Shown piece by piece: positions 12,601 through 58,471 of a stretch of 64,000 nt of DNA. The stretch lies in assembly GCF_003704095.1 (NCBI RefSeq), contig NW_020843606.1:124001-188000 (forward strand). Reading direction: 5' to 3'. The position numbers and the translations under genes were made by a program. Below the pieces are notes generated by a model, which saw nothing but the letters and a program-made list of their open reading frames with translations, did no database searches and had not been told where the DNA came from. Source of the stretch: Pocillopora damicornis. Taxonomy: Eukaryota. The stretch's first letter is position 1. The number at the start of each line of letters is the position of its first letter.

Positions 12601-15600
12601 CCATGTAATAAAGCAGATGAGTGATTAGGGTGAAGACCTCGAATTCAGTTTTTATGATCTCACCTCCCACGAGGTACACTTCGTCTTCATTTCCTGGATC
12701 GCAACCTTCCAAATCCGTAAAATCGATGAGGTGTGCATCTGGACCAGAGTGGCAAGCTTTTAAGTTGTGCATAACGAACAATTTATAGCTTTTCTTAGCA
12801 GTCTCTAAAGCACATTTCCTGACCGCATTTCCTCTGGTCTCAAAATCGCCATCAAGGTATGTTGCATTGTCTGACTCTAGGGATGGAATGGTCTGAGAGG
12901 CGTTCTTGAAGCAACCCAGTAGCAGATGTTCCACAGATATACCTTTGGAAAAGTAAAAAAGAAAATAGACATTAGAATTGAATATGAAAAAAAATAATAA
13001 GTTCCTTAGATAAGGCGATGAATGGTATATTTACGCAATGATGTTAGAAAAATCTCAGCATCGTTAGTGGTCCCTGACAATTTTCGGACTCCTGCTAAAT
13101 TCTACACCCAAGTGAAGCGAGGCGCTGAGAAAGTGCCCAGGCCTCCGTGTCCCCACCTTGCTTAGGAATACAACCGTAAACGCTGCGAAAAACTCTGGCT
13201 AGGGTTTGAAACGGATCTCTTAATAATCTCAAAACAGAAAGTAATGAAAAAGTCTCCTAGTTTTACTTACTCATCTCACAGGTGTCTCCTTGAAATTCTG
13301 GTGGACAAGTGCATTTGTAACCACCAGTAAAGCTAGTACAATTCCCATTGTTACTACATGGAGAGCTGACACATTTGTCGACAACTGTGGAATAAATTTA
13401 AGTACCACAGTCATCTCAAATCACACTTAAAACATGTGAGAAGGATTTTCCTTTGGTAATCTTTGATCTTACAACAGGAACTTGACAAATAATGAAACTC
13501 GGATCCGACCAATGTGTTCACACCCTTTATGAAGAAGCGGCACTATAAACAGTGTTAATTTTTTTTTTTGATAATTTAAAATTGATATCAATATTTCATA
13601 TAAATGTGACGTCATATCTAAACAGTCACGAGATTAGCACAAATAAAGACGTTTTACGATCATGTACCACTACATCTGTAATATTTTGGGGCTTACAAAA
13701 AAAGCTAAGGACAAAAATACAAATGGATAAAATGGTTCCTTAAAAAAAAAAAACTTGCCTTCACATATTCTCCTAGCCAAAGTGAGGTTAAAATTCTCTG
13801 ATAGCTCCCTCGTATTTGTAGCCTGCAACAAGTGGTGTTCTTTGGGATTTGAAGCGATCTCGCTTAATTGACCCAGAGACACCTGGCTGCCAATTGCCAC
13901 AGAAAACAAAGTTACGTTGGAGTTTTTTAAGTTAATTGTTGGAATAGCGATGTCGTCATCAGACTTCTGGGAAGTGATAACGACAACGATAGTAGCAACA
14001 TCCATTCGCGAGTAATTGCCATATAGCCAATCTTTGACTGATTCCAGTAATTTACCCAAAGACACTTGCGAACTGTTTGGAAAATGCGGCGCTGTGGCAT
14101 TTTTCAGGTCTTCTTTCGTTTTATAGACCCTCGTCTCATTTCCAGCCAGTGTGATGATCCATGTTTTATTGGTTGCCAAGTCAAAGTTGCTCGATAAATT
14201 AAAGATAAAGCTGAAGATATTTTGGAAGTTCGCCTCGCTCAGCGTGTAGGATCCTTCCACAGAAAATACGACATTCATTTCTGTGGAACAAATGGCTGAA
14301 AAAAGATAAATAAATAAATAAAAGAGGATGAGAGGAAAAGTCCCGAATGAATTGAATGCCTTATCGATTCGGGCGTACGGATTTTTAAACTAAGCAAGAA
14401 CAAGTCGTCTCCCTAACCTCCTCTCACCTCTCCCCACTCCTCCCCCCTCCAACTCTTTATTAAGTGACGAAGGGTGATATTGATGATTCAAATTGAGGAG
14501 CATGAGCAAAATGAAGAGGGGTTGCCGCGAATTAAAACGACCAGTGTCCTTCTTTTAAAATAAACCTACGACTTTAAATCTATTATAATCATGTGCTCTT
14601 CAAAGTTGAATATATCTCAATTTATGTTGGAAACCACCAGGTTGTTAAAGTGACTTCGAAAACCACAGAGTATTTACGTCACAGTTGTTATATTCAGATA
14701 GTTGTTATTCAGATATGACGGCACTCTTCCAGCTCTGCTGATTACAATCTTGTTCGAAGGGTCTGTCGATGAAGCGAGACGCTGAAAACAAGATTTTGTC
14801 GATGAAAGCGGCAGCACCTCTCTCAAATAATGGATAGGACACAGACTTTAAAACTTCTCATTAAATCACCGTGGAACGTGAGCAGGTTTTTTTTTATATA
14901 TTCCGGCCCCCTTAGTTTCCTCTGCACGTAGCTTTTACGCCACTCCCGATGAAAAGCCATTCGATAAGTTTTAGTTCTGGTTCAGTTGATTAAAGTAGTT
15001 AGTTATTCGTATTGCAATGAAAAACGCTTTACGCCCGTTTCGCTAATCGTCGAGTTCGCTATATGTTCGTTACTAACATGCCGAATTCGCCGCCTCTGTT
15101 AATTCACAGGTTTAATTTCTCTTTTAACCATAAACCACGAGCAATATCTGTAATTTATACTCCCAACTTCGTGACTGCCGTCTTTAGGAGTCAGTTAAAC
15201 TGATCATATGCAAATTACCTTCCAGTTTGCTTTTAACCGCCTCGTTGATTTTTGTGATTGTTGCGAGGTTACGTTTCACAAGTAAACATGATTGTAGGGT
15301 GGAACGTATTGATGAAGTCAACAAAATTGTAAGCTTCTTTCATAGAAATGTCCCATAGTAAAAAGATGTCATCAAGAAATCTAGATTAGAGGGACTAGCC
15401 ATTAACAGTCGTTTTTCTAGGTCTCACTCCATTGTGAGCGATGCACGTGCTCGACAAGTAGCGAAACTTAACTTTCAGTTAGTTAACCTTGAAGTTCTGT
15501 AACGTCACATTTATCCGGAAATTAGTCAAATTTTTTTGGCTGTGCGTAGTACTAATTCAAATCAAGTTTAAAGTGAAAATAACTGGGTTATTACGTGTTT

Positions 15601-16262
15601 TGATTTAAGAATAGTTTGTATTTTTGTCCACATTACATGTACTTGCCACTTACTTCTCTTGTTCTTATCGAGATTTTCAGCTGGCAAATAAACGTTTCCT
15701 TTACAATTTATGTTGTGAAAAGAGTTCAGAGAGCGAGAAGTTTTCGATGGCATGTTATTTAATCACTGAAAAGTGAATTCCGTGACATGATTCACTATCA
15801 ATTTATTCTAGTCCTATCAACATGAACAAATATCCTTGAACAATCATCTTGTATTGTACTGCCGCAGTGTTGATCCTACTAACCACTACCAAAAAAAAAA
15901 AAAAAAAAAGCATACTTGTTTATGCCTTAGAAAAAATCGTACAAAATCTTCCGGGCAATGTTCCGGTTATGAATACCTTTTCAAGTCTGTATTCTGTTAG
16001 GGGACGCTAAATTCTGTTTGTGTTTGCATACTTTACATGCAGATCAGCAGGCTCTCGTAACAAAGCAATTTAATCACACCGAAGACATCGCAAGCGAAAA
16101 CCATGAGAGTATCTAAATAATTTCACACGAAGTGCTAACCACAGAAGTCATTTTAAACAACATAAACTTACCTTCGCTACTTATTGACCTGATCCATAGG
16201 AACAATAACAAGTTAAAAGACAATAACAATAATGATATCCTTGCTTTGTTTTTGAGTGCCAT
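221..16262 (-). CDS. Gene B: paralog of gene A, 3'-partial (runs off window start); SP-VWA-EGF-WSC-like-F5/8C x2-FN2-[EGF-cbEGF-VWA]x4-EGF-EGF...
   Basis: 25 phase-consistent exons (5,521 nt) from ATG at 16260-16262; exon order, sizes and sequences match gene A exons 1-20 plus 3 extra F5/8C exons. Confidence 0.88.
671..913. repeat. Intronic tandem duplication, ~140-bp period
   Basis: TGATAAAAACCTGACATGCTCA.ATGCAA...CTTCTGTAAGTTCCC at ~698 and ~838. Confidence 0.75.
942..1502 (-). CDS. Gene B exon: VWA (MIDAS DSSAS intact)
   Basis: 561 nt phase 1-1. Confidence 0.92.
1852..2449 (-). CDS. Gene B: EGF + cbEGF exons
   Basis: 2336-2449, 1852-1971 (DVDEC). Confidence 0.85.
2825..3391 (-). CDS. 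Gene B exon: VWA (MIDAS intact, GVGCCF)
   Basis: 567 nt; DGSGS...LTDG. Confidence 0.92.
3895..4561 (-). CDS. Gene B: EGF + cbEGF exons
   Basis: 4445-4561, 3895-4011 (IVNEC). Confidence 0.85.
5721..6257 (-). CDS. Gene B exon: degenerate VWA
   Basis: 537 nt; LDRGKN, no MIDAS. Confidence 0.88.
6620..6875. repeat. Degenerate MITE-like repeat with terminal hairpin
   Basis: imperfect inverted repeat TTATTCTCCTAAG...GTGGTGGA / TCCACTAC...CTTAGGTGAACAA. Confidence 0.4.
6905..7442 (-). CDS. Gene B: EGF + cbEGF exons
   Basis: 7335-7442, 6905-7027 (DVKEC). Confidence 0.85.
7528..8091 (-). CDS. Gene B exon: VWA (MIDAS DGSAS intact)
   Basis: 564 nt phase 1-1. Confidence 0.92.
8309..8689 (-). CDS. Gene B: EGF + cbEGF exons
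   Basis: 8570-8689, 8309-8422 (DVDEC). Confidence 0.85.
9243..9398 (-). CDS. Gene B exon: fibronectin type II domain
   Basis: CVFPFIY...[18 protein letters not shown]. Confidence 0.92.
9821..10791 (-). CDS. Gene B: F5/8C-like domain 2 (3 exons)
   Basis: 10639-10791 (AWCP...FQMDLG), 10219-10355 (ISKVIVQG), 9821-10013 (VSVQP...CVRTEMTGC). Confidence 0.78.
11228..12229 (-). CDS. Gene B: F5/8C-like domain 1 (3 exons)
   Basis: 12068-12229 (SWCP...KVDLG), 11592-11728 (YLNKVTLQG), 11228-11381 (AQYLSFSP...LCLRVDVF). Confidence 0.78.
12664..12942 (-). CDS. Gene B exon: WSC-like domain
   Basis: 279 nt; LGCFKN...[15 protein letters not shown]; shorter C-terminus than in A. Confidence 0.8.
13271..13384 (-). 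CDS. Gene B exon: EGF
   Basis: 114 nt; [12 protein letters not shown]...[13 protein letters not shown]. Confidence 0.85.
   Translation of the reverse strand: MSTNVSALHVVTMGIVLALLVVTNALVHQNFKETPVR
13759..14295 (-). CDS. Gene B exon: degenerate VWA; GC donor
   Basis: 537 nt, ends ICE-G|GCAAGT. Confidence 0.85.
15271..15424 (-). mobile_element. Penelope-like retroelement RT fragment in gene B intron 1
   Basis: translates LEKRLL...[11 protein letters not shown]...[17 protein letters not shown], matching the PLE RT motif (R-Y/F-x-D-D-I-F...HP-x-I-K-F-T-x-E). Confidence 0.75.
16172..16262 (-). CDS. Gene B exon 1, signal peptide [30 protein letters not shown]
   Basis: AAAATGG start context, basic n-region, Leu core, GTAAGT phase-1 donor. 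Confidence 0.82.
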
Positions 16263-18116
16263 TTTTCTCAGGTTGGGTTAAGAGCGGCGCAAAGATTTCA
16301 CTTTGCTCTCTGGCTTGTAAGTTCTATCGCAAGTGTAAAAAAACTCACAACTATCCATAAATCTGCATATTCACGTATTTTTTATCACTCAATATATCAA
16401 TCCAAGTGTCGTCATGAAACAAACAAAAGCAAACGGAAACTGCAGGCTACAAAGACATCGATATTAGACCAGAAGGTAATGACAAATCTCGCACTTAAGA
16501 TGAATATTCTTGGGCTATGTAACTCCGTGGAAATCCTAAACTTTTATCAATTATAATTCTGATAAATTCTGAGCGATAATTACGGGAAGATCATAAAATG
16601 GTTGCCTGTGACTCACAACAAATAATTGTTTTTCCGGTTGACTGAAAGATATATTTATGATCTGTGGGTCGTTTACGGTCCGTTTGGAAAGAACAGGGGT
16701 GAAACTGCGATATGTTTTGTACTTTTTCAAGTTTGTTATTTGTAATCTTAGTAAATTTCCTCCGTCCTTAAGCTTCCTCGTTCCCTTCTGACTCACTCTT
16801 TTGTCTTTGACATTTGTCCGTCCTCGCAATTTACTATTTTAAGTTGTTCATACAACAATAACTGTCGTGACGTAGATTGGGAGAGGTTCAATGTCCTCGC
16901 TCACCAGGTCACAAGAACAGGAAAATAACCAATTCCACGAAACAAAGCAATGAAACAAAAATGGCTTCTTCAAAAACTTCCATTAATTATCAAAAATTTA
17001 ACTTAAAATGTTCTTGAACTACTACAGGTTGCGCCTTTTTATTGCTCTGTTACGTTATTTACTCCGGGCGTTGATGATTAATCCGGACTCTTATTCCCAT
17101 GCTACGCGCGGGAGAGACAAGAGAGAGATCCTTGGGACCAGGCTGTGTACTTATTGAACAGGTCCGTAGATCAAGAGATTGACATGCACGGCATGTAATG
17201 TGTCATATAATGTTGATAACATTGGATTATGAGGCGAAGGCCGAGAGTCTCTCGAGGAATTGTTTAATGATTAAACATTGACACAAGAATTTTCGTGATG
17301 TTAGTTTATTCATGATTTTTTCTTAATTTACATATATGATATAAAATTTGTTTAAAATAGAATAGGTTTAGTAATTGTATACTACCTTAAAACCAGTTTT
17401 CCAGGGTCTCGCTGTTGCGCTGTTTTCACCCAACTAACGATAACAAAATTGATTTTTACGGTCTAGAACAAACGAGACGAGATCTTAATAATCGGAGCCA
17501 AGTCGTAACAATCACAACCAAATTAGCTTAAATTTATACTTATTCAATCATACGTCTACAATGCTATCGAACAAGGACTTTGTATAACGTATCTATGATT
17601 TTAAATCAATCAAATCTTACAGAAAGATCGTTTGGTTTGATACTCTAAATTAGGCACCGCAAATAGGTATTACCCCTCTTTACGGTGGCCAATTTACCTC
17701 ATCGATTCTGTTCATAAAACCAAACTATCTTGTAATTTCCTCACTGAAGCAGCATCACAGTTTATCTACAAACATCAGTTTTCGTTACACATCTGTAAAT
17801 AATTCTGCTAGCTGTCCAAAAACAAAGACTCTCATATCAGTCTAACGTTCTGGGGCACGCCTTGCAAAAGACTCCCTTACGTGGACGATGCTATTTGGGG
17901 AAACCTCCAAAAAGAAAAAACTCCGCTTTTTAAACCACACAACAATCGTATTTCATGCCTCGGTTACAAACAGGTTTTCTGTACCAATCGAGTTATCAAT
18001 AACGTGAGCCTCAACTGTTTATAGGAATCTTAAACTATGCAACAAGAACTGCATGACAAATGCTGGGGTAGTGCAGTTTAAGACAGTCTATGGTACGATA
18101 AATAACTTGTGGAAAT

Positions 18117-18194
18117 TTAAAGGAATGGAAAAACTTGACTCTTCTTCCTCTGGATTTCTTCCAACGTTGTCGTTCGGCGATCAAAGCTAAAAAT
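18117..18194 (-). CDS. Gene A last coding exon [25 protein letters not shown]
   Basis: CAG acceptor with upstream CTAAC branch-like motif, phase 0, TAA stop. Confidence 0.6.
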   Translation of the reverse strand: MFSFDRRTTTLEEIQRKKSQVFPFL

Positions 18195-21100
18195 CTGATT
18201 CAGAAAAACATGAGTTAGAAAACGGTTTTTTTTTCAAGGAGGCAGCAATGTGGAATGTATGATCTTTATGTCGCTTTTTTTGCCTCAAAAAGATGCATAT
18301 CGCTATATGCAGCAAAAGTTTACTTGTTACCTTGTTTTCGTAAGAGAAAATTCCATCTTCGGCCGTCTGTTGCGGAGAAAATGTAAGTGTCCTCTTCTTC
18401 TGATCCTCTGATGGCTCCTCAGGGAAGAAAATATTGTCGTAAAAATCCTCATAACCTTCGTTATCGCTGCCATTGTCTTCGTTATCGTCGTAGTCATCAT
18501 CTTCTTCCTCTGACAACTCCCGATATCGCGGTAACTCAAAAATCCCTTGTTTTCTTCGTTTCTCTTCGAGTTTGCTCTCTGGGTAAACACTTTCATAAAA
18601 CGCGTTTTCACTGTGAACCTCCCCCGGTACCACTTCCTTTCCGTTCACCTCCACACTCAGCGTTTGTACTTCAAAAGCTGAAGGTAGATTCTCGTAAATA
18701 TGTTCGTATTCTTCGTCATCTAGACTCTGATAATGCCGCTCAATTCCTTCCTCTTCTTCCTCGTCTCTAACGTAAGACTCGTACGCTTCGTTCCAGATTC
18801 CAATGCTATTCAAGGCTTTGTCAGGGCCCATCTCGATTGCCACAGTCTGCACCTCATACATGGGCAGATCAGAGGGGATTGTTTGGTAGATTCCTTCTTC
18901 TTCTTCCATTGTTGAATAACCTTTCATTTGTCGTGAAGATCTCTTCCTGTAGAAAAAGAAAATTAAAAAATGAACAATCCATAGAAATGATAGCCAATTT
19001 CTTAAAAACACTCCGCGAGGAGCTACTTGGCATGAGCTTACACGAATACAAAAAACCGCATAAAACTAAAATGATAGACCAACAAGGATCTAGTCCTCGA
19101 AACATCATCTTTTCAAAATTCGGTGCCGAGGTCTACATACCTTTACTTATCTCTAACTGACATCAACCTTGTTGCGTCACTTTCCGGACGCAACACTAAA
19201 ACAACGACTCAGTGCATGACCCTTTTTTCGTGTAATATGATATACTCGAAAACGTCACGAACTTATATTTATTTTACCTATCAGCAAAATTTGCCGTCGC
19301 AAAATGAGACGCAAATCGTTTTCACTTACCGAAGATAACGTATAAGGAATAACAATGAGCCGCCCAAAAGGAGTGCACCAAAAACTGCTGGAATTACTAA
19401 AAATACAAGACAAAATAATTAATTAGAAAACGGAGAAAATAGATAAATGAAAATTGATTTCGAAGATTTAAGAAGATTTTGTGCTACTGTGCTTTTCTAC
19501 TGCGCTGGAAAGTTTGAGCCATCCTCTGAACCAATCAGATTCAGGACTAAAACCATTTGAGACTTGCATTGATCATCCTCGTTTTCACGCGCGTCAAAGA
19601 AATTAGCTTACTGAACTTTGAGTTCCCATTATTCCTAACGTTACTTGACCTTTATTCTGATTGGACGTTAAAATTAATTTGGTTTGGTTTCACGAAACTC
19701 GACACGAAACTCTCTCTAATTAACATTATTTCCGAATTCGTTGTTGCAAATAATTAAAAAAACATGTATATTTGCGCAAGAATTCATGACTTGAAAAAAG
19801 AGGAACAACTCAAAGCTTTACTTCGGAGACCAAAAACCATAACCTACCAGCTATGATTCGATCAAACCCTGCGCTTTCCTCTGGCGTTTCGTTATTCACT
19901 CTCCGAAGCAGTATACCCGAAGAGGGGAAGTCCTCTGCAATGAGAAGACATTAATACCACCTGACTAATAAGTCTCCTTCAGGGCAATTAAACATTTCAT
20001 GAAAAATGTCTTAAAAGAATTTGATAATATATCATTATAGCACGCTCGCGCTGAAAAGAAATTAATCCATTCTCATTATCTGTTTACCGCATTAGTTACC
20101 AGGTTCAACTCGGCAGCTAAGTTATTCACAATTAATACCCCAATACCTGCATGGAGAATTTCATTTTCTACTGAGGGAAAGTAAGGACTTCTCATACGTT
20201 TTTACATAGTGTAATTACCTGAGTCGCAGCCATATAAAGCGATGCGCACACAAGCAGACGAACCAGTGAAACTGACAGGATGAATTCGGATGTAATGAGC
20301 TCTCGTTCCTTCAAGACTTAGATTTTTACCTTGAATGTCATCATTTGCGTGAAACTATAATGATAGACAAGAGGAACGCGTTAGGTGTCTTCATTATGCA
20401 TTAGAGACCACTTTCATAAATACATGTGTATCAGTTATTTCAACGTCCTAAATAACGACTTGCCGTTTTAAATTATCCTGTGTGAGTGCAAATTCTGCTC
20501 TCTGTTTGACTCATGTACATACTTTGTGTTTAAGAATTCTATAAATTGGTCTGCTCGATTCCTGGACTGTCTGTTGGTGGATTGGTTTGTGGTGTTCATT
20601 TGCACACCTGAACTCACTGAACTGACCCATCTTACGGGAAATTTGATGAAAGTTCTCACTCTTAGGCGAAAATTAGCAACGAAATCTCCGCTCTTGCGAA
20701 CCATTGCCGAGTAGATCTCTAACAGAAATTTAACTTACAATTCTAGTTACTCCTTGTTCAGTGTAGTTGACGAACGATCCAGGTTGAGAATCGTTACTCA
20801 TAGACACATAATAACTTTCGACCCAAGAGTTCGTTGAATCATCGGTGACACCTTCGGTCTCAATTACGGATACGTTTGTTAGGTACCCTTAAACACAGAG
20901 AAACGGTGACAACAGTTATTCATTTGCTAAAATGACAAAGCAGAAACTACTGATGTGAAAGTAAATAGATGGTACTCGTGAGTAAAAAAACAAATAATTT
21001 AGAAGATAATAAATAACAAACAGAAGTATACCAACACGAATATACCAATGAATAAACACTTGATTCTTTGTAAAAAATAAAGGTAAGAGCGAGAAAACTG

Positions 21101-36100: not shown

Positions 36101-39100
36101 GGTTCCATTATTGTGGCAAGGGTTTTCATGGCAGTAATCAATCTCTGAAAAAAAGGCAAAAAACCCTACCTTCAGTATTCCATTAATAAGGATTCCCCCG
36201 GCCTAAAAACTGTTTCTTGACGTCATACAACTCTAAAAGGTGACGTGCTTAGGAAATATCGGGTCCCTGTAAGCACCCCCTCTACAACTATTACAGTATA
36301 ACGCTAACCTTCGCAGTTTACCCCTGTCAATCCTAAAGGACATTCGCACTTGTAATCGTTTGGAAGATTGTGACATGTTCCATTATGTCGGCAAGGGTGG
36401 CTATGACAATAATCTCGCTCTGTAAATCAAATGAAAGGCAAGGTAAGAATACTCTGTGTCTCATTGTGTTGTGTACTTCGTTGTACTGCGTATTTTTTAA
36501 CAGCCGGCAATTCCGAGATACCAAAGCCTATGCTCTGTAATAAGGGCAACTGTGAGGACTTCACGTGGCATTTTCTTAACTCCAATACTCCAAAATATAC
36601 CAAGCACAGGAGAGAAAAGTGTGCATTTGGCTCAGTTAAGTTTTGTTGAGGTCTCTTTTTGTTCAACAAACCTGCGCAGCTCTTTCCAGTGTAACTTGGG
36701 GGACACGAACAAGTGTAGTTTTCAGGATTGCTTTGACATGTTCCATTGTTTAGACACGGGTTGCCGAAACAGTGATCTTTAACTGAAAATTGATAAATAT
36801 ATTAATGTACACGTAAGAACTTTGAGGTTGTAGAGATATATCAAATTGATGAGAGAATTCAGCTAAAGCTGATAAGGTTCTGTCACAAGGCGTACCGTTT
36901 TTTCAGGAATAGCCTTTCCTGTCTTTGAAGACGAAAGGTTTGAATAAAGCCACACTTTATTATGGCCTTTCTGGACATGGTCTTTGACATTACACAAACT
37001 AGTTACTTTTCCTATACAATTACAATTTTCAAGAGAAAAATGTTCGTGTTTATTGAAACAATCTGTAAACCGGAGAGAGAATAATCCATACGAGATGATA
37101 TTGAGCTTTTCGGGAACAGAAAATTTTTACGTCATACTTAATTACTTTCACATTTTCCCTTCGCTGAATCCCAGAAGGCAACTACACTGAAAGCTGTCTG
37201 CGGTGATGATACAGGATCCGTTGTTCGCGCATAGACTTCCATAACAGTAATCTATTTCTCCGGTAAAATATCAAATCATTTTTTCATTGACGTTCAAACC
37301 CGTTTTGATAATCGTGACCATCCTCATTCGAACAGAATTCCCTCAGCTTAACATCGGACGGGTTGCGGCATTAACAAATTGCCTGAAGTGCAGGAAAGCG
37401 CGAGTGATCAAGTCGCAACTGGTTTTAGTTTTGTATCCGATTCATTGGGCGGGTGTTACATAGTTTCTGGATCAATCATAGGGGGAAAGAAAGCAAATAA
37501 ATGAAGATTGCTCGAGGAACTAGCAAAGAAACCAACCTTCGCAGATCTGTCCATTGTATCCCTCTGGACACTCACAAGTGTAGTTATCGAATAGTCTAAC
37601 ACATGTCCCATTATTTAGACAAGGACTGTAAGAACATCGATGTAATTCNNNNNNNNNNNNNNNNNNNNNNNNNNNNNNNNNNNNNNNNNNNNNNNNNNNN
37701 NNNNNNNNNNNNNNNNNNNNNNNNNNNNNNNNNNNNNNNNNNNNNNNNTCTTTGATACTCACTCTCGCAGCTTGGTCCTGAAAACCCTGGCATACAATCA
37801 CAGGTGAAGTTGATCGGCAAATTATAGCAGGTTCCATTGTTCAAGCAGGGACTGTAGTGACAATGATCAAAGGCTATTGATAAAAAGAAATATATTTTTT
37901 TCAAAACAGTTTAAAAAAAGGTTCGGAAGTTCATCTTAATTTAGGGTTTTGAGAACACGGGAATGGTGGATCCTTCAATCCAATACTTGAAAATACAAAG
38001 TAAAAGCGGTGAGATTGATTATTTGACATAGGAAAGGTTTTGTAAAATTGGTTTTTTCAAAAAACTCCCTAAACAACAAACCTTCACAGCTTTTTCCAGT
38101 GTAATTTGGAGGACACGAACAAGTGTAGTTTTCGGAATTACTATCACATGTTCCATTATTTTGACATGGGTTGTAAAAGCAGTGATCTTTGGCTGCAAAT
38201 ACAAGACAGAGTTAACAGAGAATAAGAACAATGACGCTATCGATTGACAAAAAAGACAGGAAAGTATCTGAAATTTCCACGCTATAGTCATGTAAGCATG
38301 ATTTACACTGACAAGTTTTCTTGAAATTTATCTCCAAAAGTTCTTTGCCAAAGAGTAAGAAAGAAGATAAAATAGAAATCAAATTTAATATGAAAGAAAT
38401 TAGAAGGCCTCTTTCACATCATGTCTATCCTGGTGATACTCACTCTCACAGCTTCGTCCTGTAAACCCTGCCATACAATCGCAGGTGTACTTGTCTGGAA
38501 AATTTTGGCAAGTTCCATTATTAAAGCAGGGACTGTAGTGACAATGATCTATAGCTACAAATAAAACACAATACATGTTTCTGATTAGTAATACTCATAA
38601 ACATATAAACTCATTTTTTGTAACCAAGGTTTTGAACTTGATCCCATTTTTTAAGCTAAGGGTTTTTGGACAGAGCACAAGTTATGAGATTGTGCATTTG
38701 GCGCAAAGTAAGTTTTGTATGATACAAACCTTCACAGTTCTGTCCGGTGTAACTTGGAAGACATGAACACGTGTAGTTTTCAGAATTACTGTGACATGTT
38801 CCATTATTTTGACATGGGTAGTCGAAGCAGTGATCTTTGGCTGCAAATACAAGAGAGAGATAACGAAAAATTAGCCCAATGACATAAGCGATTGACGAAA
38901 AAGACTGGAAAGTATCGAAAATTTCCACGCTATACTAATGTAAGCAGGATTTACTCTGACAAGTTTTCGTGAAAACCAGCTTTTTCTCGAAGAAGAGTAC
39001 AAGAGAGGAATTAAAGGGAGGAGGAGAGAAAGTAGGAGGCCTCTTTCACATCATGTCTACCCTATGTGATACTCACTTTCACAGCTTGGTCCTGAAAACC

Positions 39101-48100: not shown

Positions 48101-51100
48101 AATTGCCATCTGACAACCCATCATCACAAATACAATTATAAGTCCAATCCTCCAAGTTTTCAACACAAGTACCACCATTGTGACATGGCGTTGTGTCACA
48201 GGGGCTTGAAATTCCTATAATTTTAAAAGGCATGTTGGCAACAGGCCGGACAAATGAACTATTGTAGATATGCATTAAGGCTAGCTCCATATATCACCAC
48301 AACGTTTAAAGGCGCTAGATTCTTGTCTATCATATCATATCATTTTTGAGATTGTCGGAAAACGAAATGGCATCCAAACCGGCCTTAGCTTTAGGGGAAG
48401 ATAGAGAATCTCTCATAATACGTAGTTTTATATCCCTCTATGGAATAAATAAAATAAATAAACAATAAAGACATCATAGAGGTTGATGTTCGAGCAAATA
48501 TATTTTTGGGAACTTTAATAGAAAAATAACAATCCGATAAAAAATTAATTAAGATAGAGCCAATTGTTATGATAAATGTACCTTGGCAATTGTCCCAGAG
48601 TTGGTCTCTGTCATAATTATCAGTAGTTGCACACCATGGTTGGTTGTGATTGTCCTTAATACACGAGTATCGTTGATGTCCCATGTACCAGAATGGGAAA
48701 ACGCAACATTTGTTCCTCTGTGTTGGGTAGCAACCTTCGACAAATAACAAATTAAAAGTTAAATAAATAGGGAAATAGAAGATCATATTAATTAAGCAGA
48801 ACCCCATTCAGTCAAATTTTCAAAAGAAAAGAAGAATACGGAGCTTAAGGTCAATGACTGAAAAAAATCAACGGTAAGGGTCGATTACTTATACACATAG
48901 CAACTAAGCACAACGCTGCTTCTAGCGCTACCTTTCGTCACTTCTTCTCCCTCTGTCACGGTCGTCACACAGCCTTCAAGATCTGTTCTCAAGCACCTGC
49001 CATCATGACTATTGGAAGAAGGCGCCAGGCGCACTGAGTCGATGAGGAAAGGTGGTGACACCCCATGGTCATAGCCGTAGTCTCCACTTTGACCTGACAT
49101 ATACTTTTCAAAAAGCTGAAATAAAATTTATTCCATGAATACAATCATATTATCGCTAGACTGAGTGATAAAAATGATTCATTTTGGTCCTAATATTGCT
49201 GTATGCTTCAAGTCCTTCTTGTCTGTAACAAGCCGCGATTTAAACCCTTTCTGACCGTTTCATCACTTAGTAATAATAAAATGTAAAACATTTTTTCCGC
49301 TCTTTTGACTTTTTTTTGGTAAGAAAAAGAAACCTTTTGCTGCTACTGATCTGCAACTATTTAACAAATAGATTTTACATTGCCATGCGCCTTTAAGAGC
49401 TAATCAAAGTGCGCGTAGAATTCGGCTGATCATATAATAACGATCAAACGTTTGGTCGATTAATAGAAATTTAACTCGACGCGTAAGCTAGGGTCGACAG
49501 TTTATTGGAGATATTCTTGCACTTGAAAGCGTCGTCTCAACAATGAAACGTAATTCTGAATAGAATCATGTTAAAAGATGCCTGGTAAATAGCAATTTGT
49601 TAATAGTTAATGATAAAAAATAATTAGAGCGTCGACCGTCCACCGTGTTGTAGTTGTAGTCCTTGTCTTTTGTTTTGTTCTTGTTTTTTTCTAACAACTG
49701 CTGCTTATGACGCATCTAGTCACATGACCGTGCTAAACTTGTATAACTGCGAATAGCTGAGATTCGGAAATTGTTAAAACTTGCTTCTTTTGACGTTTCG
49801 TATGCATCGATCAAAAGCTACTTTAGGGAAAATTTAATAGGTCTATCCTTCCTTGTAACTTACGGAATCTTGACTACTAGTTGAAAGGATGCGATACGGA
49901 ACAGGAAATAAGGGGGAATAAGGAATCTTAACTCACAGTACAAGGCAAATCCCCATCGGGAGTTTCACTATCCGAAGTATAATTCACACAGATTTTCTCC
50001 ATTGAGTTCGCTGCGCCCAGCTTTCCTTGCACAAAGAGTTTAGACAAGTATACTTCTCTCGCTGTAGAGAGATAACCAGGAAAAAAATTAACTGGTTAAA
50101 AAGTGTAATCATTTAAAGTGGGGTACAAACCTTATCAAAGATTAAGAGAGATTTGCAATAGAAAGTTGTAAAACCAAAGCTAAAGATATCACAACGGCCA
50201 ATCAAAACAAAGGTGAAAGTCGCAGTGTGCCAATGAAATCGTAAGTTCGAGCAATTACCCTCCCTGAAGCTCGGGAAAACACGCGAGACCAGGTTGTGAT
50301 TGGCCAAAGTTTCGTGCCTGTTCAGGTGAAAAGGTGTTGCAACTTGTCCAGACTAATCCCAGAACTTAGAGAAGTATAATCCGTGCAATTCCGCAATTTC
50401 TTCGACACTCATAAGATTTTCAATCTTCCCGCATCTCTAAGTTCTCGTTTACGACTCACACTTTCATTGCGAGTTAATATTATCAAAATTTTTCATACGT
50501 CCACTAAAAACGGCAATGTTAAAATGCAAGACTTACCTAGATCAATTTCAAAATATGGGCGGGAGTCACCATCAGTTGGACACCAAGAGTAACTTCCATT
50601 TAGAACTGGAACGTTCCAGGATCCTTTGTAAGACGAACCTCGAACCGTTGATTTCGAGACGTGAATCAGGCCATTCCGTAACATCTTTCCACACTTGGCT
50701 TTTATTTCATAAAAATAGAGTTAGGGAAAGCAGAATGATTAGCTGAAACGAAAATACGGTAGTGCTAACTTTGAGCGACGACTTTTTTTGTTTGTTTCTT
50801 TTTTTTTTTTTTTTGTTATCTTGAAGGACATCTAACTTTATATTAACAGAAAACATTAACCAACCTCCAAGAAGATAAACCTCATTGATGAGGGGACCGC
50901 CTTTTCCTCCATCAGGACAATGTGCGTCACCATACATAGCGTACCTGCTAAGAGCTGCGGAACCGGAGAAGCACTCGCCGCCATTTTGAAGAGCAAACAC
51001 CTTGTAGTCGTTTTTAGCAGCCTCTAAAGCGCATTTCATGACTGCCTTGTCTCTTGTTCGATATGGTACATCTAAAAATGTTGCATTTCCATTTTCCATC

Positions 51101-54100
51101 GAAATAAGAGCGTGTGCGTTCGCATCATCTACGAAACATCCGAGAGACAGATATTCCAGGGAACGACCTGTGCGAAGAAACGACATTTCGAGAACATTTC
51201 CTGAATCTTCACGAAACACTTTGCCAATAATGAACACTTAAAAGTGCTCCCCTAAAAAAAATTCTATAATGACCTTAGGGTTAAAAATATACTTGATATA
51301 TTCGTCGCAAGTATTGAGAAAGAAAAGGAATAATTCCCATTGCTGTTGAAGATTCTAACCTATTCTTATCACCGAGCTGCAAAGTAACTTGCTTTACTTG
51401 TGACAAACTTGGCATCATCTTTTCACCCAATGTATGTGAAGTGATGTCACCATCTTGGAAGAACCTGACAAACCCCAGGGTGTAGTAAAACACTAAAGTG
51501 TGATAAATATCTTGGAAGATCTTCCTTACGTTCCTGGATACTAGTTATATCTGGTACACTTATTTCACATTGACACTGAGTTGCGTTTAGAAGCGCAGCT
51601 TGTGGCAAAAATACTTATAAGTGAGGGAAATGCGAGCTAGTCTCGTAGATGTCACGAATGTAAAATTGAATCTTAGACTACTCATCAATCTATTCGTTTA
51701 TTATTTATATATCCATTAATTTGTTATCGACATTAATAGAGTTCCTCACTTTTCTCACACTGGTCGCCGTAGAATCCCACAGAGCATGTGCAGTTGTAGC
51801 TACCCTTGAAACTATTGCATTTACCATCGTTTTGGCAGGGAGAACTCGCACAACTGTCCTCAACTATTCCAATGGAAAAAAAGAAAAGCAAATTATCTTG
51901 GAGTAGGTGTCAGCTCACTCCTCTTAAATGGAATTGGCAATCACAACTTACAATATGAATATGGACAAAAGCAAAGACAAAACCCCTAGAAAGGACTTTG
52001 GTGAAAAAGTATCTGACATTTCTCTGGGAAATGAACAAACCCATGAAGGACTCATTATTTCCCAAAGACCCTAAACTTTTGTATATTTTGCAGAATTTTT
52101 GGGATAATACTCAATATCTACCTTGGCAGATTTTCCTTGCTAATTTCTTTGCCAAATACTCATCCAATCCATTCCAGCTGCTCAAGGCAATGAAGTAATC
52201 ACTGTCAGGGTCCGAAGCTACTTCTTTCAATTGACCCCCCGAGTAATCACTTCCAACCCCAAGTGCAAAAACAGTTGCATTTTGCTTCTTTAACATGACT
52301 GCAGGGTGACCTATATCGTCCATGGATATTTGACTTGCGATCAAAATCGCAATGTCGACAGCATCTCTTTGATGACCCTCGTCCAAAAACTGTTCTGCCA
52401 TGTTTGTCAGCGTAGCTCCCACGAGAGTTTCTGTTGCGTTGGGGAACTGTTCATACTCAGGCATTAAGGAATGAAGGTCTGATCTTGTTTTAAACACTCG
52501 TTTTTGATTCCCGTATGCTAGAAAAATCCACGTGTCGGCTGCATCCACGTTTACGTACTTAGACACATTTACTGCGAATTTCAACGTTGATACAAAGTTC
52601 TCCTCTCCCGTCTTGCTTGATGCATCCAATGCAAAGCCCACGTTCATTTTAGCTGAGCAGATAACTGTAAGAGAAATAATGGTAAATTTTAAGCCTGGTT
52701 ATCTAAGGGAATTGTGATGTCATTTAGTGATTGACACGGGCATACTTGGAGAAAAAGAACCTCGAATGCTCGTAGTGGGACTGGAACCTACGACCCTCCA
52801 ATTAGTACTGCGGATGCTCTACTAATGAGCTATAGGAGACTTGTGGCAGCCGAAGCCGTTTAAGTAGGTCCGTGATGACAAACTTCCTGCATACATACTA
52901 CTAGCGTAGTAATGTCGAATGTGTTACCTTCGCTCATCATCTTTCATAGTTAAATAGTCACCATAAAGTTAACATGAAGACCAGGGTAAGTGTTTCAGTC
53001 TTAAGCATTTAATTACATCTAATGTTAGATAGAGATGAGCGGTTTTTCAAGCATCATTAACCCACAATGCATAGACAACATATTGTTTATATTACAAAGG
53101 CTGTTTAACTGACTCATTCGTCATAACCTTTCTTTTTCCCTTAATGTGGAGTGCATATCCCTCCAAACTAGCCCAACCCAAGAGTCAATCAAATAAAGTT
53201 TATTTCAATCACATAGAGGGGCAACCCTTGTTTATTTAAAATCGTCAATGATTTGCCGGGAAGTTTGCACGGATTAAGTAAAATGGCTCTTGGACAAAGG
53301 AAACAAAGAAAACATTTTATGTAGTGTACTAAAGTGCAAATCGTATGTATTCATAAGTTCATGAATAGGATTTCTCTCACTGGTCGCGCATTCTTACTTA
53401 AGAAGAGAGATTTTAGGCTGACAAGGTTCACCTACATTTTAACACTTCAGCTCGGCTATATGCAATGTTCGCTAGCAGAGCGGAAAGCGACTAAACTGGC
53501 GTGACTCGACAAAATAAACAATGGATCACACTCACTTTAAGTGCTCGACACTTATCTTTGTAGATTGGCGCCACTGTATATTAGTGGTTAAATTAGTGTT
53601 AGGCCGATCTTAGATCTAATAGCACCTTGTTACTGGAGCCGCCTAAAGAGAAAATGCTTTTTACACTTGGTACTAGATCCTTTCATGCTGCACCATGTTT
53701 GTGGAATAGTTCGCCCCCTGGATTGCGTTCCATCCCATCATTGACAATTTTTAAACGCAATCTTGAGACCTGCCTTTTTGGTCAGGTTTTTCTTTACCGT
53801 TTTAGACCAGAATTTTTATTTTACTTAAGTTTTTATAAATATATTTAACCTGATTTGTTTTATTTTATTGTAAGTCTCATTTAAATTTTACGTGGTATAC
53901 TAAGAGTAGTTTTATAGGTGAATCACTGTAAAGTCTATAGCGCCATGGAAATTCTCGAGTTATCATTATTATCACTAGATCGATCATCAATGCAAAACCC
54001 AAGAAATATTTTCAAACCTCTCTTAAAACACATAGACTTGAATACGAAATTGCATTGTTTTTCAAAACTTCTTTATTCATTTATTTATCAATTCTAAAAG

Positions 54101-58371: not shown

Positions 58372-58471
58372 NNNNNNNNNNNNNNNNNNNNNNNNNNNNN
58401 NNNNNNNNNNNNNNNNNNNNNNNNNNNNNNNNNNNNNNNNNNNNNNNNNNNNNNNNNNNNNNNNNNNNNNN
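58372..58471. other. Assembly gap (100 N)
   Basis: run of N. Confidence 1.

Follow-up and report, generated by a model that had tools for sequence, protein, structure and literature searches.

Corals fuse with their neighbours or reject them, take up symbionts by engulfment and form their skeleton on a matrix template, and almost none of their surface receptors has been tied to an intracellular pathway. Herein, a 64,000-nucleotide window of the genome of Pocillopora damicornis (contig NW_020843606.1, positions 124,001 to 188,000) was analysed for a gene, termed gene A, which lies on its minus strand and encodes a giant membrane protein with a tyrosine-rich cytoplasmic tail. The window is eukaryotic, has a GC content of ~38% and includes two 100-N gaps, at 37649-37748 and 58372-58471. 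A stretch of the tail at 18685-18765 had been flagged as a full immunoreceptor tyrosine-based activation motif (ITAM); the original prediction held that the receptor could drive immune, phagocytic or allorecognition signalling. Literature searches turned up no paper dealing with this gene or with coral ITAMs. The locus raises the question of whether the tail carries a conserved ITAM, or whether the flagged tyrosines belong to a tail that is organised differently. The answer favoured here is that the tail is, on balance, probably a multi-site phosphotyrosine docking platform, in which the ITAM-grade spacing would be a lineage-specific state of a conserved module.

An ITAM-grade match in a cytoplasmic tail

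The product of gene A spans the membrane in type I orientation and has a very large ectodomain of adhesion type (VWA/EGF/FN2/WSC-like/discoidin), because its exons join in one frame from a discoidin-like end through a stalk and a transmembrane (TM) segment into the tail. In RNA contigs from three studies, the TM and tail exons are connected in frame at a GT..AG joint that reads ...RYL-RKRSSRQ..., and the flagged stretch lies in the cytoplasmic part. The original assignment of this tail to a VWA/EGF receptor-like protein is borne out by Pfam matches in the ectodomain, by the RNA joints and by the in-frame TM exon.

The flagged stretch (18685-18765, minus strand) comprises tail residues 62-88, with tyrosines at positions 73, 81 and 85, and was examined by translation, regular-expression matching, shuffling and conservation analysis. 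Its half-sites are YQSL (18732-18721), YEHI (18708-18697) and YENL (18696-18685). Verified ITAMs have a spacing of six to eight residues between half-sites, mostly seven. With two Yxx[L/I] half-sites, a spacing of eight (x8) and upstream acidic residues, the stretch fits both D/E-x7-D/E-x2-YxxL-x8-YxxL and the ELM-style pattern [DE]..Y..[LI].{6,12}Y..[LI]; minus-strand translation and pattern matching thereby confirm the full consensus as first described. Within 18685-18765, no differences between RNA and assembly were found in the four RNA runs mapped.

The tail spans 231 amino acids, of which 15 are tyrosines and 25% are aspartate or glutamate, and it had been cautioned that an acidic, Tyr-rich tail raises the chance of such a match. 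In 100,000 same-composition shuffles of the 231-aa tail, Yxx[LI]x6-8Yxx[LI] appeared in 2.4%, the Leu-only form YxxLx6-8YxxL in 0.54% and the full acidic ITAM form in 0.18%. The caution is fair but does not explain away the match in this tail, given these frequencies of 0.18-2.4%; an ITAM match is improbable for a single tail, yet not rare over a whole proteome of Tyr-rich tails.

The tail is best treated as a predicted disordered region bearing short linear motifs, because an AlphaFold2 (AF2) model built from an 18-sequence alignment had a low mean pLDDT (predicted local distance difference test) of 49 and showed no secondary structure before exon residue 181, that is, up to residue 180. These motifs include nine of the form Yxx[LIVMF] and a long acidic cluster, together with further SH2-type motifs (three YxN, one YDxI and one YxxQ). 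Neither inhibitory nor switch motifs (ITIM/ITSM, [ILVS]xYxx[ILV] or TxYxx[VI]) were matched anywhere in the 231-aa tail.

Conserved half-sites, variable spacing

A word-indexed protein search with the tail exon returned 17 relatives, one 98% identical to the tail (P0001), one 78% and most 50-55%; among them is a sequence from the stony coral Oculina patagonica (P0016). The tail family is narrow and confined to few lineages, because a profile search over 1.84 billion cluster representatives gave only 11 clusters. The Pfam scan of the tail open reading frame (ORF) assigned no family, a search of PDB sequences by the tail profile ended without a match at E<=1, and the ESM Atlas gave no usable match for the tail. 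Within the coral's own genome (234.35 Mb, 4,393 contigs), a search with the tail matched gene A and, apart from it, a single copy on contig C2790. In this third tail copy (L002/L003, G000:C2790:2167-6111), the central part of the tail exon is a run of ~0.7 kb of N, which masks the motif position.

Among the stony-coral relatives, Tyr73 is tyrosine in 16/16 sequences and Tyr85 in 17/17, and neither is ever replaced by phenylalanine. The +3 leucines of both half-sites are at least 90% conserved in the same set, and both half-sites are retained in 16 of the 17 relatives. This pattern of substitution indicates constraint on both YxxL half-sites among the stony-coral relatives.

The spacing between them behaves differently from the half-sites: of the features whose conservation the original prediction called for, the tyrosines and half-sites are kept and their distance is not. 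A spacing of x8 is present in 4/17 sequences (the window, P0001, P0010 and P0005), and a spacing of x5 (HYQSLKEEPVYENL and variants) in the remaining 13/17, including P0016 from Oculina. A spacing of x5 falls outside every ITAM consensus in use, whether x6-8, x6-9 (PMC9546547) or the ELM-style x6-12; half-sites and spacing are not kept together among the relatives as a conserved ITAM would have them. The x8 sequences have E-H-[IV] in common before the second tyrosine, and in the window lineage one glutamate has in addition become tyrosine, making the third site YEHI. As read from the alignment, x8 spacing is a state of the window lineage and one other sequence only, with three more residues (EH[IV]) between the half-sites. 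When the tails are placed in a tree, the YxxL-bearing sequences group together with a support of 100/100; a single change would suffice to account for x8 on this tree, whose branching at that level is a polytomy.

More distant members diverge further. Five such clusters read Q-K-YHNA-I-YDxxD at the motif position and one reads YISQEEHHYETV, and a YxxL context occurs at this position in none of the distant clusters of the wider alignment. When these clusters are included, the second tyrosine is the only residue that is at least 90% conserved. The "full ITAM consensus" is more likely a lineage-specific state of a conserved module than a conserved ITAM, because most relatives have x5 and few have x8.

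The most conserved parts of the tail

The original prediction had also noted an imperfect pair upstream of the flagged stretch (YQTI-x6-YEVQ). Its presence was confirmed at 18844-18888 on the minus strand; its rank was not, as it proved to be the most conserved block of the whole tail family rather than a secondary element. It marks the start of a family hallmark block, and its x6 spacing is invariant in all homologs. Other hallmark blocks are a second YE(V/T)QTLT(V/L)EV element, GIYE(LP), (Y/F)EDIYDNVFFPE, GIFS(Y/F)ENK at the exon end, and the last exon.

Conservation of individual tyrosines follows a clear split. Positions 21, 56, 59, 73, 85 and 170 are strictly tyrosine, never phenylalanine, in 13-17 relatives, and at positions 31, 92, 137, 142, 166 and 203 tyrosine and phenylalanine swap freely. 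Such a split, in which both motif tyrosines belong to the strict class, is the pattern expected if the hydroxyl group, and hence phosphorylation, matters at the strict positions.

The window itself has phenylalanine at positions 92 and 137 (codons at ~18673-18675 and ~18538-18540, minus strand), where nearly all relatives have tyrosine. It reads SAFEVQ where the 98%-identical P0001 reads SAYEVQ, and GIFELP in place of GIYELP. As judged from this comparison, two otherwise conserved tyrosines have been lost in the window lineage or allele.

Closer to the membrane, a di-tyrosine pair, YSTM-x6-YQTI (18877-18918, minus strand), matches an ITAM-like pattern in relaxed form, Yxx[LIVMF]-x6-10-Yxx[IV]. 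It is kept in every family member with a visible N-terminal tail, the most distant included, except for P0005, which has phenylalanine at the first tyrosine. The pair reads YS/TTV-x7/8-YQTI in the x5-type relatives, YSGL-x6-YQTI in P0018, YSEL-x8-YQTI in P0019, YSTI-x10-YQTI in P0023 and YSAF-x7-YDTI in L010. Under the relaxed pattern, the conservation of this juxtamembrane pair as an ITAM-like element is broader than that of the flagged stretch. Its first half-site has methionine or valine, not leucine or isoleucine, in most stony-coral-type relatives, the window among them.

A probable multi-site phosphotyrosine docking tail

Src-family kinases favour acidic-x-[IV]-Y substrates, as classic peptide-library work has established, and Grb2-type SH2 domains favour pYxN. 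Against this background, the tail is probably best understood as a docking platform with several phosphorylation sites. Clustering of the adhesive ectodomain would lead Src-type kinases to phosphorylate the strictly conserved tail tyrosines, which stand in acidic context with isoleucine or valine at the -1 position (GIYQTI, HIYENL/PVYENL, DIYDNV). Once phosphorylated, these tyrosines would recruit SH2 proteins, and YQSL and YENL would together constitute one conserved di-tyrosine module of the platform. The phosphorylation, the identity of the SH2 binders and the downstream role proposed here are deduced from sequence.

Several points weigh against the docking platform. It depends on a phosphorylation and an SH2 binding that are inferred from motifs and their conservation, and Yxx-hydrophobic motifs and acidic clusters double as sorting signals. 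The window has phenylalanine at positions 92 and 137, otherwise conserved as tyrosine, and not every site can act via phosphate. Furthermore, the x8 state satisfies the ITAM consensus in every sequence feature and both partner kinases are present, and a working ITAM in this lineage keeps a low probability on these grounds. Finally, most homologs are metagenome or assembly ORFs, any of which may be an ortholog or a paralog.

Candidate partner kinases and a short-tailed paralog

Candidate tandem-SH2 kinases were sought by intersecting Pfam SH2 and Tyr-kinase matches over the genome. Two loci have two SH2 domains ahead of the kinase domain, so that both partner kinases named in the original prediction have a counterpart in this coral. 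The Syk-like locus on C1902 (L008, G000:C1902:14501-24500) has the order SH2-SH2-Tyr kinase, each SH2 domain being a single exon; both complete SH2 exons keep the phosphotyrosine-binding arginine (YLLRES and FLIRER), and the interval that separates them showed no ankyrin repeats. The Shark-like locus on C247 (L009, G000:C247:185501-195500) has the order SH2-ankyrin-SH2-Tyr kinase. Kinase loci with a single SH2 domain are present too, on C2220 and C1284. The tandem-SH2 loci agree with the Syk and Shark homologs reported for Hydra and Hydractinia (PMC9546547).

The C-terminal exon set of gene A recurs at three other loci (L007, L010 and L012), the first of which belongs to gene B, a tandem paralog. 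The first half of gene B lies in the window (exons 14278-784, minus strand), and its C-terminus is found ~1.3-2.7 kb beyond the window start (L007 7285-8700, corresponding to G000:C241:121285-122700). Its tail is too diverged for the own-genome search and was located by local tblastn on the flanking DNA, with the borders of its C-terminal exons set by homology and splice consensus. The discoidin, TM and tail exons follow in the same order and phases as in gene A, and the C-terminal half is far shorter. The tail exon has 67 codons, TPSPSGPSVRENIIRFEQEPPQHGAIPLVPTYEVQSLSMELGEEPILQVEGVNTASNDAIFSYDNK, with two tyrosines (PTYEVQ and IFSYDNK). The comparison with gene B that had been proposed turned out unfavourably for the ITAM, the 67-codon tail exon having no counterpart of the flagged motif. 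Judged by its sequence, gene B may act alongside gene A as a naturally "signalling-less" partner. The 5' exons of gene B may be represented by two nearby stretches, 14508-14752 and 15179-15346, that are covered by RNA contigs from run X15.

With the natural x5 and x8 variants and a tandem paralog that lacks such a tail, controls are at hand for the question of whether ITAM spacing is required for tandem-SH2 recruitment outside the vertebrates. The tail family and the pairing of long- and short-tailed paralogs are the parts of this locus most worth attention.

Alternative explanations

Trafficking offers a rather unlikely alternative to the docking platform, although the one that best survives. 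Yxx-hydrophobic motifs would bind clathrin-adaptor mu subunits and the Ser-containing acidic cluster would bind sorting connectors, together steering the protein to or from the surface without phosphotyrosine signalling. The nine Yxx[LIVMF] motifs in a predicted disordered tail are what such signals look like, the sequence requirement (Yxx[LIVMF] in an accessible unstructured tail) being a weak one, and the long acidic cluster suits the same role. Independent sorting motifs would also tolerate the variable spacing of the half-sites. In addition, many coral skeletal-matrix proteins are membrane proteins with released ectodomains (PMC4890752), which makes controlled delivery plausible, but the membership of the gene A protein in the skeletal matrix is supposition. 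Six strictly conserved tyrosines over 150 residues are rarely needed by sorting motifs, the -1 Ile/Val and acidic upstream context suit kinase substrates better, and neither a dileucine motif nor NPxY is present in the tail. If the tyrosines were only sorting signals, the finding would be an ordinary one.

A bona fide ITAM is likewise improbable. On this account, once Tyr73 and Tyr85 of YQSL-x8-YENL are phosphorylated, the Syk-like or Shark-like kinase of the coral would dock there through its tandem SH2 domains, and immune, phagocytic or allorecognition signalling would be set off. The parts of the original interpretation that hold are the cytoplasmic location, the constraint on the half-sites and the existence of partners: the full consensus comes with upstream acidic residues and is improbable in shuffles, both tyrosines (never phenylalanine) and both +3 leucines are conserved, the predicted disorder resembles that of known ITAM tails, and the genome encodes a Syk-like kinase with both SH2 arginines as well as a Shark-like one. 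Hydractinia Alr proteins, moreover, were reported to have x6-9 ITAMs in an animal with Syk and Shark homologs (PMC9546547). The parts that fail are the conservation of spacing, the distant members and gene B. In 13 of the 17 relatives the spacing is too short for any consensus, the distant family members have YHNA-I-YDxx at the site, gene B has no motif region, and the best-conserved tail blocks lie elsewhere; an immune or allorecognition context is unsupported.

A bolder proposal, to which only a low probability is attached, would extend this idea to a giant VWA/EGF/discoidin receptor family in stony corals with a true Syk/Shark-coupled tail. Such a tail would use a family-wide juxtamembrane di-tyrosine cassette, joined in pocilloporid-type corals by a second pair of ITAM grade. 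The long-tailed gene A and the short-tailed, motif-less gene B would then form an activating/non-signalling pair for contact, matrix or non-self sensing.

Least probable is a non-phospho interface, made up of the conserved blocks with their tyrosines, that would fold as it binds a cytoskeletal or scaffold partner, for example by beta-strand addition, with the ITAM match incidental: the tail has two copies of the YEVQT(V/L)x(I/V)E(M/V)G element, which is the only one that it has in common with the gene B tail, swaps Tyr and Phe at its aromatic position and alternates hydrophobic residues in a strand-typical manner, but AF2 predicted no structure in the tail (though a monomer would not reveal binding-induced folding) and the strict Tyr73, Tyr85, Tyr21 and Tyr170, never phenylalanine, are left unexplained.

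Comparison with known systems

By analogy, gene A would work most like ITAM-bearing or multi-phosphotyrosine adhesion receptors, namely Draper/MEGF10, Hydractinia Alr and the vertebrate immunoreceptor chains. With the vertebrate ITAM chains (CD3 zeta/epsilon, FcR gamma, Ig-alpha/beta and DAP12), the coral protein shares two Yxx[L/I] half-sites, upstream acidic residues, a disordered tail (predicted in the coral) and type I topology; its x8 spacing agrees with the consensus, and its genome encodes a Syk-family kinase. It differs from them in that the motif is carried by a giant multidomain adhesion-type protein rather than a short signalling adaptor chain, in having x5 spacing in most relatives and a third Yxx[I] between the half-sites, and in that the motif, known from sequence alone, is one among many conserved tyrosines in a 231-aa tail.

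The Hydractinia Alr proteins (PMC9546547) are, like the gene A product, cnidarian single-pass membrane proteins with sequence-predicted ITAMs. Their ectodomains, however, belong to the Ig superfamily (V-set-like), whereas that of the coral protein is built of VWA, EGF, FN2, WSC and discoidin modules, and their tails are highly divergent, whereas the coral tail is ~55% identical among stony-coral-type relatives.

Draper, MEGF10 and CED-1 resemble the coral protein in combining an EGF-containing adhesive ectodomain, a single TM segment and a multi-tyrosine tail. According to the account of Ziegenfuss et al. (2008) given in PMC9546547, the Drosophila Draper tail has a non-canonically spaced ITAM-like pair, to which Shark is recruited once Src has phosphorylated the pair. 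Unlike these receptors, the coral protein is dominated by VWA modules, has neither an EMI domain nor a nimrod-type EGF array, and lacks the NPxY that accompanies a YxxL/ITAM-like pair in a Draper/CED-1-type tail. No sequence similarity was detected between the coral tail and the tails of Draper, MEGF10 or CED-1.

A further parallel, drawn from its published description, is the "TSP-1 and VWA" membrane protein of the Acropora skeleton (PMC4890752), which is coral-restricted and likewise combines VWA and F5/8 type C (discoidin) modules with a single TM segment. It differs in having TSP-1 repeats, two discoidin modules and only three VWA modules, and its tail is not described as Tyr-rich.

Gene model and expression

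Exon joints were mapped by comparing contigs of the four RNA runs, from four studies, with positions 14400-20399; joints were found in runs X3, X6 and X12. The RNA-defined 3' exons of gene A are 20354-20219, 19934-19848, 19396-19330, 18946-18331 and 18194-17290, and all introns are GT..AG. The joined C-terminal exons, built from the window sequence and used for the frame check, the shuffles and the local tblastn, form a single frame that passes from the discoidin-like C-terminus through the stalk, the TM segment, RKRSSRQ, the flagged motif and GIFSYENK to the last exon and a stop.

The ectodomain exons (21844-52647, minus strand), identified from the ORF list and Pfam, comprise ~12 VWA exons, several EGF exons, one FN2 exon (48391-48807) and one WSC-like exon (50707-51237). 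Pfam matches reached E=4e-35 for VWA, 1e-10 for EGF, 9e-17 for fn2 and 1.9e-5 for WSC, the last below the curated cut-off. A 13.4-kb RNA contig terminates in the TM exon, and this contig and the exon order suggest that the exons from 52.6 kb to 21.8 kb form one transcript. The N gap at 37649-37748 falls inside the EGF-exon region.

A discoidin (F5/8 type C)-like C-terminal part and a pre-membrane stalk follow at 19848-20354 (exons 20354-20219 and 19934-19848, minus strand), delimited by RNA joints and translation, the domain name being given by sequence reading. These exons are conserved in L007, L010 and L012. The TM exon (19330-19396, minus strand, 67 nt) is the one strong TM candidate in a hydropathy scan upstream of the tail exon, and has AG/GT borders and RNA joints. 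The main cytoplasmic-tail exon (18331-18946, minus strand, 616 nt) runs from the basic stop-transfer sequence RKRSSRQ to GIFSYENK, with RNA joints at 18945/19329 (cut +1) and 18194/18331 in X3, X6 and X12 and a consistent frame. In L010, the most distant relative, the discoidin, TM and tail exons were all matched.

The last exon (17290-18194, minus strand) is coding over 18194-18120, has its stop at 18119-18117 and continues as 3' untranslated region (3'UTR) to a poly(A) site near 17290, as defined by an RNA joint and a loose poly-T end. It is kept in L012 and in P0016 from Oculina; in L012, an x5-type relative, the discoidin, stalk and TM exons are conserved along with it. The exon ends in (I/T)QRKKS..(F/Y)PF(L/I)-stop, and its conserved C-terminal PF[LI] may be a further binding motif. 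The 3'UTR (17290-18116, minus strand) is ~830 nt long; in run X3, 17 positions disagree with the assembly and 7 nt are deleted at 17591, which suggests that this run came from another population or a sister species.

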